Source of the DNA: Lepidodermella squamata
Lineage: Eukaryota; Animalia; Gastrotricha
Assembly (NCBI GenBank): GCA_047495785.1
Contig: JBLDXI010000010.1
Coordinates: 1,178,001 to 1,242,000 of the forward strand
Reading direction: 5' to 3'
Length of the DNA: 64,000 nt
The position numbers were made by a program, and so were the translations under genes. This document shows, in pieces, positions 325-63,559 of the stretch. The notes beneath the pieces are model-generated. The model did no database searches, had not been told where the DNA came from, and was given only the letters and a program-made list of their open reading frames with translations. The first letter of the stretch is position 1. Each line of letters starts with the position of its first letter.

Positions 325-3300
325 ATGAAGTTTCTCTGGTTACTTTTCAACGTTTCCGTTACAAGCGTATTCTGCATCGAATACGACACGGGTTACATCG
401 AATATCAGTTGAGACAACTGCCTAGTGTTGTAGGCTATTGGCCTCTGACAGCCTACTACAACGTTCAAGATGCTCTCGGAGTTATCGATGCCGTTTCCTC
501 AATTGATCCACCTCTATTTGGCCAGGGTCCTTACGGAACTGCCAATTCTGCGATTCAAATCGACTCTTCGGATGCGGCAAATCAGCGATACGTTACTGCA
601 TCATCGCCTTTGATAAATGTTGCAACATCGTGGAGTTTGGCGCTTTGGGTTAAGACAGAGATAAATCAAGGCATGTGCTTCCTCGAATTTTACCCAGGCA
701 GGGCGCATCTCTGGCAGTGGAGCGCAGTCAATTCTCTTTATTTCTACCCGGCGAACAACAATAATTCAGCTATAACTATGCCATGTACCATGAATTATAC
801 TTGGACGTTTGTCGGGATTACGTACGACAGTGTGGCTCAAAAAATGCAGCTGTTTTGTAATACGGTCGCTGGCCCACTTGTAGCAATAACAGTTCCACCA
901 GCTATATCAACGGACCTAGGAATAGGCCGAAGGTATTATTTTTAATTCCTGCGGGAAATCGTTGTAGCGAATGAAATTTTACGTAGAGATGGCTGGACGC
1001 ACATTGGAAAGTATGCATGCGTTTCTATGCATAAAACTGCGATGACAACCGCCCAGTTCCTTCAGGTGAAAGCTAGCTGCCAACTTTTTTCAGGTATCAT
1101 TTTGTCACGCAAGATTTTCGGTAAAATCGAGTAATTTTTTCTCCAGCCAATTGCTCAACAGCATGCAAAAATGGCGGCACGTGTGTTGCCTACAACGTTT
1201 GCAAATGCCCTTCTGGGTATGCCGGTGTACTTTGCCAGTTGGGTAAGTGAAAAATGCGCGTTAAAGTTGGTTTTACGCTGTCCCTCGATTTAGTTGCAAC
1301 CGATAAAGACCTGATTGCCACTAGGTTTAGTGAAATTCCGAGCCTAGTCGTTTTCTGGCCTTTGACCAGTGAATATGGAACCTTGGACGCCACTTCGAAC
1401 AAAATCCATGGCAACCTTACAATGTACATGAAATACGACACTAGCCCATTCAACAACGTTGTTGCATCGTCTGTCAGCTCGCTATCACTAACGAATTACA
1501 TCACAGCTAAATCCCCACTCCTGAATTTTAACTCAAGCTCCTGGACTTTAACGATGTACATATACGCTGTGACGCCCTGGCACCCCATTTTCGAATATCT
1601 TCACCCGACAGTGCCATACGCAGATTGGGGCATGCACCTGTGGCTCAGAACCGCAAATGACTCGTTGTGGTTCAACACCCGAGCGCCGAATGGCTTGGAA
1701 GTTGCTTGCACGTTGATGAAATCGTGGAAATTCATCGCCGTGACATGGGAAGCGACAACGAAGACGCTGCAATATTTCTGCGACGAGTTTTTTGTGACAC
1801 CCACCTATGTTTCCACCGGATTTCCAATCACATCAGATAGTGTACTAATCGGAAGAAGGCAAGTTATTAAATGGAAATCGCGGTGGCATTCATAGTGATG
1901 CCCTAATTGCATTGATATAGCTCAATTGACCAGACTCAATTCTACGATGGGAAAGTTGCATGTATATCGCTCTATTCCAAGTCTCTTAATGCAAATGAGA
2001 TGCTCCAGGCACGAGAGCTCTGCAAACTCTTCACAGGTGAGAAGTTCCATTTCAATATCAAAGCACTGCATGAATTTCATTTCAGTTTCTTGTACCTCAA
2101 ACATATGCAAGAATGGAGGGCAGTGTGTTGGCTACAACATTTGCAAATGCAACGCGCCCTGGGCACCGCCGTATTGTGATACATGTATGTTTTAGGTTAA
2201 AAGCCTCAAGCTCTTACAAGCCCTCGCTTTCTTTTGATAGTTCCTATAAATAGGACCTACATCAGTGGAACCCTCGCTACGTATTCTGATCTGGTTGCCT
2301 ATTGGCCTTTAACCTACGAATACGGTGTGAAAGATGCTTCATCTAACAAGATCGATGGCATAATGTCCCGAGACTACAGCTACTCAACCGGGCCCTACGG
2401 AAGATCTAACACTGCTTTCGCTACAGACAGATCACTCACGCCGCAACGTTACGCTACGTTCAAATCCTCAAAGTTGAACATAGGCGCTCAGTCTTGGACA
2501 GTTTCGCTTTGGTTGAAAATGGATAGTACAGCGGGCATAGATGCATTCTTCGAGTTTCCGGCTTCGTCTTCAGCTAATGGCATGCACTTCGCCAAGAATC
2601 CTCCAGACACAAATACGCTTTGGTTCAATTCAATGGCACCGAGTGGCGGGGTTGGCGGGGTATCGTTCAGCTGCGACGTTACAACTCGCTGGGCGTTCAT
2701 CGCAGCGACTTACAATGCTACTACGAAGAATTTGAAAGTTCTATGCGGCGATTGGTGGAGCCCAAGTACAACACCAACCGGCAGCCCTATTACATCCGAC
2801 ACATTGTATCTCGGTCAGACCTATGATGGGTTGTACGGAAGTAAAGGTTCCATGGCTTGTTTATCGATTTTCACCAGGGAGCTAACAACCCCGGAGCTCA
2901 TGAATGTCAGAGACTTGTGCCGAATGTTTACAGGTGAGCTTCGAGTACAATTTTGCAGGCCGAATCTAATTTCATTCATAGTTCAATGCGCCGTCCCATG
3001 CTTCAATGGCGGATCCTGTGTCGGCTATAACTTATGCCTATGTGCTTCCGGCTATACTGGACAATCTTGTGGGACGGGTTAGTTTTTCCTGGAGCAATAT
3101 CTTTCGTTACCTACCTAATTTTTAGCGATTGAATTGGACACTACGGCGAGATCTAAGCTAGCCTTGTTACCAAGCCTAGTCTCTTACTGGCCGTTAGGTT
3201 CTGATTACGGAGCTAGGGACGTTACGTCCTCGAAAATCGACGGCTGGTTCTCAACAGATAGGACATTCAATTCCGGACTTCTCGGCGCTTCCTACGGAGC

Positions 3301-63100: not shown

Positions 63101-63559
63101 AAACCTTTAAAAGTCGTGGCTTACGAATCGGAGACTGCTGTTGCTACTGCGTCTATGGTCTTGTCGATTTGTGGCTTCTTTTTGGGAATAGTCGTGTGCT
63201 TGGACTATATGACATTGACTCGTGATTTGGCTCGTCTGCGACATAATTTTGGACACCTTCTGAAGCGAATTCGCGACGTTGGGCGGGTGAGGGAGCTGCA
63301 TCAATTGAGGGCGAAATTGCGGAACAGACGGGCGGCGGAGAATTGCCTGCAGCATATCGAGGATGTTAGAGAAGCGCAAAAATTGGCAACGGCGGGATTT
63401 CTCGTTAATCGCATAACCGAGGAGCAACTCATTGCAAACCCTTTGAATAAAGGGTTTTCAAGGCCGATGTCAAGTGATGTGTCACGAAGCCAAACAACGC
63501 ATACTGAAGGCGAGATGGACATACCAGAAGCAGAAATTATGCCAGCATATGCCCAATAG
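51161..63559 (+). CDS. G6: paralog closest to G2, with an extra EGF-CBM42(AbfB)-EGF cassette in the stalk
   Basis: ATG 51161 ([17 protein letters not shown]); five LamG+EGF units. Stalk exons at ~55840-55935, 56000-56095, 60293-60811 (EGF-like + AbfB), 60859-60954, 61004-61099, 61154-61252, 61310-61405; then ShKT, sushi, TM; stop TAG 63559. One 4.2 kb intron (56096-60292). Confidence 0.85.
56283..60204. mobile_element. ~3.9 kb non-autonomous CACTA/EnSpm (CMC)-like DNA element in a G6 intron
   Basis: Termini CCCGAACTGAAAT / ATTTCAGTTCGGG flanked by TT on both sides (possible 2 bp TSD); many subterminal GATGTA(A) / TTACATC repeats; no transposase ORF recognised. The superfamily assignment is inferred from the termini only. 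Confidence 0.65.
59786..60031. repeat. Long hairpin: perfect 95 bp inverted repeat (59792-59886 / 59931-60025) closed by an imperfect inner stem
   Basis: Checked base by base: the arms are exact reverse complements. The 44 nt between them also pair imperfectly around a GTTTTT loop. Confidence 0.97.
60293..60811 (+). other. G6-specific exon encoding an EGF-like segment plus an AbfB/CBM42-like beta-trefoil carbohydrate-binding module
   Basis: 519 nt phase 1-1 exon, open throughout. [26 protein letters not shown]...LARDATFC...[12 protein letters not shown]...[13 protein letters not shown] matches the CBM42 repeat pattern (GLA..C.SFES.N.P.YYLRH...ND.S..F..DATF). Confidence 0.8.

Follow-up and report, generated by a model that had tools for sequence, protein, structure and literature searches.

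A tandem family of giant membrane proteins with five lectin-like heads in the gastrotrich Lepidodermella squamata

Contig JBLDXI010000010.1 of the gastrotrich Lepidodermella squamata (assembly GCA_047495785.1), called C10 below, carries an array of giant, related genes for putative membrane proteins. We analysed a window of 64,000 nucleotides from this array (C10:1178001-1242000); positions given without a contig name are those of the window. The stop-to-stop open reading frames of its + strand form six repeated series, and an all-against-all comparison places homologous blocks in the same order in each of them. Reading frames, exon models and this comparison together bear out an earlier note on the sequence, which had placed here six paralogs on the same strand (G1 to G6) and a gene relic, at the positions given below. 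Each paralog is predicted to encode a protein of about 1,650-2,190 amino acids (the exon models being approximate) with a signal peptide, five units of a Laminin_G_3 jelly-roll domain (the 'heads') and an EGF module, an EGF stalk, two ShK-like modules, five sushi-like (CCP) modules, a transmembrane helix and a conserved tail. The EGF spacers between the heads are of the tenascin/teneurin type, and the stalk is variable, with two to seven EGF modules and, in some members, a beta-trefoil of the AbfB/CBM42 type. This is the architecture that the note had proposed; it holds for G1, G2, G4, G5 and G6, and does not for the heads of G3. The genes and their parts are as follows, the numbers of EGF-like modules being motif counts.

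325-7358, + strand: G1, complete; about 2,033 amino acids in about 19 exons, 5 heads, 7 EGF-like modules
5253-5594, + strand: ShK-like exon of G1
5647-6940, + strand: CCP exons of G1
6948-7010, + strand: transmembrane helix of G1
7008-7025, + strand: LDYMTL motif of G1
7478-8760, + strand: relic; C-terminal part of head 1, a small LamG exon and the start of EGF/head 2
11310-22995, + strand: G2; 5 heads, about 10-11 EGF-like modules, a 3.6-kb intron containing transposons
24725-30694, + strand: G3, divergent and shorter (about 1,650 amino acids); 3 full heads, 1 truncated head, 4 EGF-like modules
32393-40508, + strand: G4, the reference paralog; about 2,142 amino acids in about 22 exons, 11 EGF-like modules
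32393-33000, 33370-33969, 34319-35011, 35205-35754 and 36069-36698, + strand: main exons of the heads of G4
36759-38283, + strand: EGF stalk of G4
38392-38733, + strand: ShK-like exon of G4
38795-39253, + strand: CCP1-2 of G4
39311-39496, + strand: CCP3 of G4
39552-39767, + strand: CCP4 of G4
39820-40508, + strand: CCP5, transmembrane helix and tail of G4
40098-40160, + strand: transmembrane helix of G4
40158-40175, + strand: LDYMTL motif of G4
40792-48614, + strand: G5; 5 heads, about 11 EGF-like modules
51161-63556, + strand: G6; 5 heads, EGF stalk, AbfB module, then ShK-like, CCP, transmembrane and tail parts; 12 EGF-like modules, a 4.1-kb repeat in one intron

The exon models come from a small dynamic program that rewards codons backed by three or more other paralogs and permits GT..AG introns. 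The program found complete open paths of 2,033-2,190 amino acids in 19-23 exons for G1, G2, G4, G5 and G6, and for G3 a model of 1,657 amino acids with one problem junction. The joined models served for lengths and architecture only, and all database searches were done exon by exon. LDYMTL occurs exactly six times in the window, once per gene, at the cytoplasmic end of a hydrophobic helix, and a transmembrane helix was found in all copies. The motif [FYW]WP[LWF] marks five heads in each of the five complete models, and in G3 three full heads and one that is N-terminally truncated.

Evidence of transcription comes from X1, a probable RNA run. Its contigs skip three introns of G3 of 48-53 nucleotides with GT..AG ends (26640|26689, 28095|28149 and 28930|28983). 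Thus at least one member, G3 or its close sister, is transcribed and spliced. Contigs of the sister gene, which is 87-93% identical, map onto G3 at the 90% threshold, which confounds polymorphism in run X2. The intron after CCP3 of G3 (29678-29728) begins with AT, whereas the donor of an 88%-identical sister gene is GT. A canonical donor that would spare the last cysteine of this CCP3 is not present, two X1 contigs run into the intron, and its retention would lead to a stop five codons on. G3 may thus be decaying, or it may yield a truncated product.

The family extends beyond the window. Genome searches with the tail exon gave 38 matches, all open and near full length except two fragmentary ones, and the ShK exon gave 37; the family comprises at least 36 genes, most of them on C10 between 0.75 and 1.8 Mb, four on contig C48 and one each on C28 and C33. 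The other loci were sampled as alternate 10-kb pieces and 3.3-kb loci, so the catalogue of heads is partial, and within this sample the order of heads, ShK, sushi and tail is the same. In a tree of the CCP1-2 exon the six genes of the window fall into at least four lineages interleaved along the array, the exon of G5 being closest to that of a gene 177 kb away (C10, about 1,047 kb). Such interleaving is accounted for by segmental duplication. At 87-93% DNA identity, the gene that immediately precedes the window, G1 and the relic run colinear with G3, G4 and the 5' part of G5; G1 and G4 are 88-91% identical over their whole length. This is a segmental duplication of about 32 kb comprising two and a fraction genes (C10:1165886-1173000 and window positions 1-8637 against window positions 24469-41623). 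About 1.3 kb with four EGF exons (37058-38357) is present in G4 and absent from G1. The end-point of the duplication lies in the relic, where positions 8413-8637 match 41406-41623 at 89% DNA identity. Lacking a start codon and a signal peptide, disrupted in its spacing and 80-93% identical in amino acids to the corresponding parts of G5, the relic would be a truncated copy of a G5-like gene through which the end-point cut. The family thus appears to have grown by tandem and segmental duplication, with occasional loss.

The heads were matched by Laminin_G_3 of Pfam (PF13385) at E values of 1e-13, 2e-10 and 5e-13, the scores being 51.7 bits for head 3 and 41.3 bits for head 5 of G4 and 50 bits for head 3 of G3, with a cut-off of 27.6. 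Heads 1, 2 and 4 have no Pfam call of their own and can be aligned to heads 3 and 5, with which they have invariant residues in common; an alignment of 30 head sequences contains six such residues, among them a pair of cysteines. On exons of the window Pfam also matched EGF_2 and a teneurin-type EGF. Between genes, heads at the same position are 44-96% identical and heads at different positions 25-39%. Since the closest heads of two genes are those at the same position, the five-head array is older than the gene duplications, in which whole genes were copied.

The AlphaFold2 model of head 3 of G4 (pLDDT 93.5, pTM 0.92) is a jelly roll with helices at both termini. When structures were compared exhaustively, 183 chains scored Z>=8, every one listed having a ConA-like fold. 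The top match is the arabinan-binding domain 4 of AbnA (5hon_B; Z 22.0, root-mean-square deviation 2.4 A over 190 residues), followed by the lectin-like jelly-roll subdomain of clostridial neurotoxins and NTNH (Z 20-21, a resemblance of fold only), sialic-acid-binding CBM40 and the lectin domains of trans-sialidases (Z about 17), pentraxins (Z 15-17) and LamG/neurexin domains (Z about 13). Foldseek matched the same model at E 1e-10, and in the ESM Atlas the heads have bacterial Laminin_G_3 clusters as neighbours, both in features and in shape (TM scores of 0.77-0.82). Sequence identity to solved structures is 10-18%. By these models, the fold of the heads appears nearest to microbial carbohydrate-binding Laminin_G_3 modules. 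The label 'pentraxin', which the earlier note had attached to the heads, is not confirmed: eight head exons contained no Pfam Pentaxin (PF00354) match at E<=10, a PTX3 profile matched only at E 0.009, and the structural scores of pentraxins fall below those of modules resembling carbohydrate-binding modules (CBM).

A second module with affinities to sugar-binding domains occurs in the stalk of G6, where it is preceded by a small cysteine-rich module.

60286-60852, + strand: AbfB/CBM42-like beta-trefoil in the stalk of G6, single exon

This exon matches Pfam AbfB (PF05270) at E 1.2e-16, with 61.5 bits for a cut-off of 22.8 and coverage of positions 30-136 of the 137 of the profile. At least five further members (C10 at about 751k, 766k, 780k, 1258k and 1269k) carry the module directly before their ShK-like exon, so that it is present in at least six, G6 included. 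Elsewhere in the genome, the region C66:167713-186423 contains at least 19 AbfB-like units, each an open frame of about 180 amino acids, with a period of about 1,010 bp, and further units lie near it on C66 and at C4:2.54-2.60 Mb. They represent a large expansion of this sugar-binding module, separate from the receptor family.

Alternation of LamG and EGF modules ahead of a transmembrane helix is also the layout of neurexins and Crumbs, and it is possible, if doubtful, that the family consists of protein-binding receptors of the neurexin, Crumbs or CASPR kind. These would mediate adhesion or organise the matrix at contacts of cells with each other or with the cuticle, their ligands being proteins of neighbouring cells, of the cuticle or of the extracellular matrix. 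LamG, neurexin and TSPN domains are indeed among the fold matches (Z 13-15); however, carbohydrate-binding modules match clearly better (Z 17-22), and several members add the AbfB/CBM42 module. The positional orthology of the heads and the purifying selection acting on them (see below) are as expected for fixed endogenous ligands, but 36 paralogs are many for a structural adhesion role. Moreover, the C-terminal residues are not conserved between paralogs and show no PDZ-type end.

The two ShK-like modules are likely to be present, although not proven. Pfam ShK (PF01549) was not called on the copies of the window, even at E<=10. A paralog 88% identical (L003) passes the same model in two stretches, with 26 bits for a cut-off of 20.9, and a family profile of the ShK exon matches the solved ShK-like domain 2mcr_A at E 0.004. 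ESM features indicate ShK clusters at 0.79, no more than a lead. Across 22 aligned sequences, one of them from an environmental relative with a mere 43% identity, none of the 12 cysteines of the two modules varies, and 30 of the 113 positions overall are invariant. Module A has the spacing C-x10-C-x8-C-x10-C-x3-C-x5-C, and the six invariant cysteines of module B are in a variant arrangement. An Arg-Arg-Leu triplet immediately after the last cysteine of the second module (38725-38733 in G4) is also invariant in all 22 sequences; it may serve dibasic processing or have a structural role. Of the five sushi-like modules, CCP2 (E 7e-8) and CCP3 (E 8e-6) exceed the Pfam Sushi (PF00084) cut-off, CCP4 (E 0.02) and CCP5 (E 0.3) do not reach it, and CCP1 was assigned by its cysteine/tryptophan pattern alone.

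Conserved in 19 tails of the family and in three relatives at about 45% identity are the transmembrane helix, the juxtamembrane helix, which is basic, and a C-terminal acidic motif. Past the juxtamembrane helix the cytoplasmic tail is not especially conserved, non-sister genes being 62-75% identical in amino acids. The tail has no recognisable FxNPxY or dileucine motif, and the one tail exon scanned, that of G4, had no Pfam match to signalling domains of immunity such as TIR, death or ITAM.

The invariant Arg-Arg-Leu, kept even in the distant relative, and the AT donor of G3, which upon intron retention would end the protein shortly after CCP3, would both fit proteins whose ectodomains are shed by cleavage or secreted after intron retention, and whose ShK modules possibly act on ion channels, as ShK-type domains of other proteins modulate channels. 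We consider this very improbable. Two X1 contigs do enter the G3 intron, but the triplet is not a full furin consensus, and purifying selection acts on the transmembrane helix and tail of every copy, which argues for a function anchored in the membrane.

Nonsynonymous (dN) and synonymous (dS) divergence was estimated by the Nei-Gojobori method on exon-level codon alignments, the block ranges of dN being those of pairs among G2, G5 and G6. In these pairs dN is 0.10-0.28 in the heads and 0.04-0.09 in the ShK exon, which confirms the polarised divergence, with variable heads and a nearly fixed ShK core, described in the note; it is 0.06-0.14 in the sushi exons and 0.15-0.21 in the transmembrane-tail part. 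The ratio omega (dN/dS) is 0.02-0.07 for the ShK exon and 0.06-0.32 for the heads, and every block is under purifying selection. The dS of the ShK exon (0.88-1.16 for the same pairs, 0.40 for G1/G4) is as high as that of the heads. Consequently, gene conversion is ruled out as the cause of its constancy, which results from purifying selection and not from homogenisation. Conversion may have acted elsewhere: between G1 and G4, dS ranges from 0.11 in head 2 to 0.51 in head 3 (13 against 58 synonymous differences at similar numbers of sites), and stretches of 250 bp are between 83 and 97% identical in DNA. Such patchiness fits conversion without proving it. The idea of a cluster shuffled by conversion thus keeps some ground in this pair and loses it for the ShK core.

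Within head types, variation peaks in a loop before an invariant cysteine (residues 131-140 of the model). In head 1 of G1 and G4 this loop accumulated 12 nonsynonymous and four synonymous changes in 20 codons, with omega about 0.9, so that its evolution is near neutral, under relaxed or mixed selection, and not demonstrably positive. Omega exceeded 1 in no whole block and in no 20-codon window of the heads.

These data bear on a repertoire of immune type or for discrimination of self from non-self, in which heads under diversifying selection and shuffled by conversion would signal via one conserved module. A large tandem array with birth and death of genes, heads that evolve three to eight times faster than the ShK core, the loop hotspot and the heterogeneous dS along G1/G4 are features that such a repertoire would have, but in view of the omega values we regard it as quite improbable. 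The heads also keep strict positional orthology, which argues for five different fixed modules rather than for a variable domain of immune type, and the G4 tail exon gave no Pfam match to the signalling domains mentioned above. An animal that is solitary and largely parthenogenetic is unlikely to need allorecognition. The 'diversified recognition system' of the earlier note is thus only partly supported overall: the low omega and the orthology of the heads speak against a dominant role of diversifying selection, and nothing in our analysis points to immunity, symbiosis or allorecognition.

Three further elements lie in introns of the locus.

16634-18388 (1,755 bp), + strand: pogo/Tc5-type DDE transposon inside an intron of G2
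19215-20155: short element in the same intron of G2, bounded by nested inverted repeats (arms of 19 and 46 nucleotides)
56150-60250 (4.1 kb), no strand assigned: repeated element inserted in an intron of G6

The transposon matches Pfam HTH_Tnp_Tc5 (E 1e-10) and DDE_1 (E 2e-8) and has terminal inverted repeats of 32 nucleotides (16634-16665 and 18357-18388); its reading frame is broken by an in-frame stop (17239-17241) and a frame change near 17880-17970. The short element may be a miniature inverted-repeat transposable element. The repeat in G6 has a near-full-length copy 91% identical at C11:931878-935730 and fragments on six other contigs; it contains an internal inverted repeat of 119 nucleotides (59786-60031) and no recognised coding domain. 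Scans of the 64-kb window for tRNA, Rfam families and tandem repeats found nothing. The tandem cluster with birth and death proposed earlier agrees well with all of this, namely with at least 36 members, a segmental duplication that left a relic, transposons in introns of G2 and G6 and signs of decay in G3.

Our preferred explanation, to which we give somewhat better than even chances, is a lineage-specific family of multi-lectin-like receptors, giant type I membrane proteins built in the manner of selectins or mannose receptors. The heads, together with AbfB where present, would bind carbohydrates or other extracellular ligands away from the membrane, as suggested by their fold neighbours, by the recurrence of AbfB and by the overall design. 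Paralogs would differ in ligand preference, mainly through their surface loops. The ShK pair, the sushi modules, the transmembrane helix and the tail would be a common module through which the members engage a single conserved partner, in cis or within the cytoplasm. The coupling of the heads to one partner had been proposed before, and the strong constraint on the ShK pair, sushi modules, transmembrane helix and proximal tail supports a common partner.

Several points weigh against this explanation. A common fold is no proof of sugar binding, as many ConA-like domains bind proteins, and the clostridial jelly-roll subdomain, among the top fold matches, is to our knowledge not itself a known sugar binder. 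A profile of the 30 heads, compared with proteins of 0.55-1.75 times its length, gave no match at E<=0.001, a result that does not extend to long proteins. The AlphaFold2 model of the ShK exon is poor (pLDDT 56, pTM 0.47), the exon models of the EGF stalk are approximate, and G3 may be mis-spliced.

A bolder version, rather unlikely in our judgement, is that of a gastrotrich-specific repertoire for recognition of glycan patterns on microbes, food particles or substrates, in which five CBM-like heads specific to their positions, with CBM42 as an optional addition, would provide each of the approximately 36 paralogs with a sugar code of its own and the invariant ShK pair would couple all of them to one conserved partner, for example a channel or a co-receptor. 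If true, it would represent an animal recognition system made from carbohydrate-binding modules of microbial type, such as has not been described in any animal.

The phylum Gastrotricha has hardly been studied. With at least 36 genes for surface proteins of 2,000 residues, spread over several hundred kilobases, the family probably has a large share in how the animal perceives its environment or attaches to it. The family also offers clean material for studying the co-evolution of a variable ligand-binding end with an almost frozen membrane-proximal module.

Relatives outside L. squamata are few. An exhaustive HMMER search of 1.84 billion representative proteins with the exon coding for sushi 5, transmembrane helix and tail gave three strong matches (41-52% identity), which come from environmental assemblies and one SRA assembly, and three weak ones. 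Relatives about 40-47% identical occur in the ENA environmental assemblies ERZ27333047, ERZ23486764 and ERZ27332993, on contigs with 41-42% G+C and introns of about 50 nucleotides, where they keep the tandem order. On a 3-kb contig from the strong matches, a single exon codes for two ShK-like modules together with sushi 1-2; it is followed by a 50-nucleotide gap, sushi 3-5, a transmembrane helix and a tail and, about 215 nucleotides downstream, by the signal peptide and first head of the next gene. Both the architecture and the tandem order therefore exist in a relative, and the environmental sequences presumably derive from another gastrotrich-like animal.

The weak matches are sushi-repeat proteins of the brachiopod Lingula (XP_013401853) and the nemertean Tubulanus (XP_074657347) and a third protein that is unnamed. 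Their resemblance to the family is confined to the last sushi module, the transmembrane helix and the juxtamembrane motif (about 120 residues; E 5e-6 to 4e-5 for Lingula and Tubulanus). The motif common to Lingula, Tubulanus and the family reads LLDxxT[IL]x[RK]Dxxx[LM][RK]xN; the juxtamembrane stretch of the Tubulanus protein, LLDLPTIAKDIRRLRHN, aligns with the corresponding 17 residues of G4. The shared cassette lies at about residues 604-655 in Lingula, and in the Tubulanus model it occurs twice, at about 416-460 and again at the C-terminus. Residues 600-660 of the Lingula protein, used as a query, found only the protein itself, the motif being too short for that database. The sequence similarity hints that the sushi-transmembrane-juxtamembrane cassette could be an older spiralian receptor chassis.

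Full-text literature searches for the domain combination and for gene family expansions in gastrotrichs found no description, and the L. squamata genome paper does not mention gene families (PMC11660948). The order of domains thus appears to be undescribed, while the receptor design itself is familiar. Alternating modules of LamG fold and EGF type in a type I membrane protein are shared with neurexins, CASPR and Crumbs. However, neurexins have LNS domains of the Laminin_G_1/2 type, a PDZ-binding end and neither ShK nor sushi modules, whereas Pfam calls only Laminin_G_3 on the heads of the window genes, whose proteins have no PDZ-binding end. Sushi repeats, EGF modules and a ConA-fold or lectin head also occur in SVEP1/polydom and in spiralian proteins automatically named after SVEP1 or CSMD3. 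SVEP1 proper is a secreted protein with vWA and HYR domains, of which there was no match on the G4 exons scanned, and the Lingula protein has a C-type lectin head; the five Laminin_G_3 heads and the ShK pair are absent from SVEP1 and from the Lingula and Tubulanus proteins.

Selectins and the mannose receptor family are also similar in design. The former likewise combine a membrane-distal lectin-like head, EGF, a sushi/CCP stalk, a single transmembrane helix and a basic juxtamembrane tail, but have one C-type lectin domain in place of five Laminin_G_3 jelly rolls, and lack the ShK-like modules and the long EGF stalk of the gastrotrich proteins. No Lectin_C match was obtained on any head exon scanned, and no sequence relationship of heads or tail to selectins was found. 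Receptors of the mannose receptor family (MRC1, DEC-205) resemble the gastrotrich proteins in having several different lectin-type domains in a fixed order, with positions kept between paralogs, a single transmembrane helix and a short conserved tail; they differ in using C-type lectin-like, CysR and FNII domains and tyrosine-based endocytic motifs where the family described here has Laminin_G_3 heads and, in some members, AbfB. The modules themselves find their counterparts in microbial Laminin_G_3 and CBM42 (AbfB) domains, which include the best fold matches of the heads and the Pfam family of the stalk module. Unlike these, they are part of an animal membrane receptor with introns of about 50 nucleotides and have no catalytic domain attached. 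If our preferred explanation is correct, the design of lectin heads on an EGF/sushi stalk would have been re-invented with Laminin_G_3 and CBM42 modules instead of C-type lectins.

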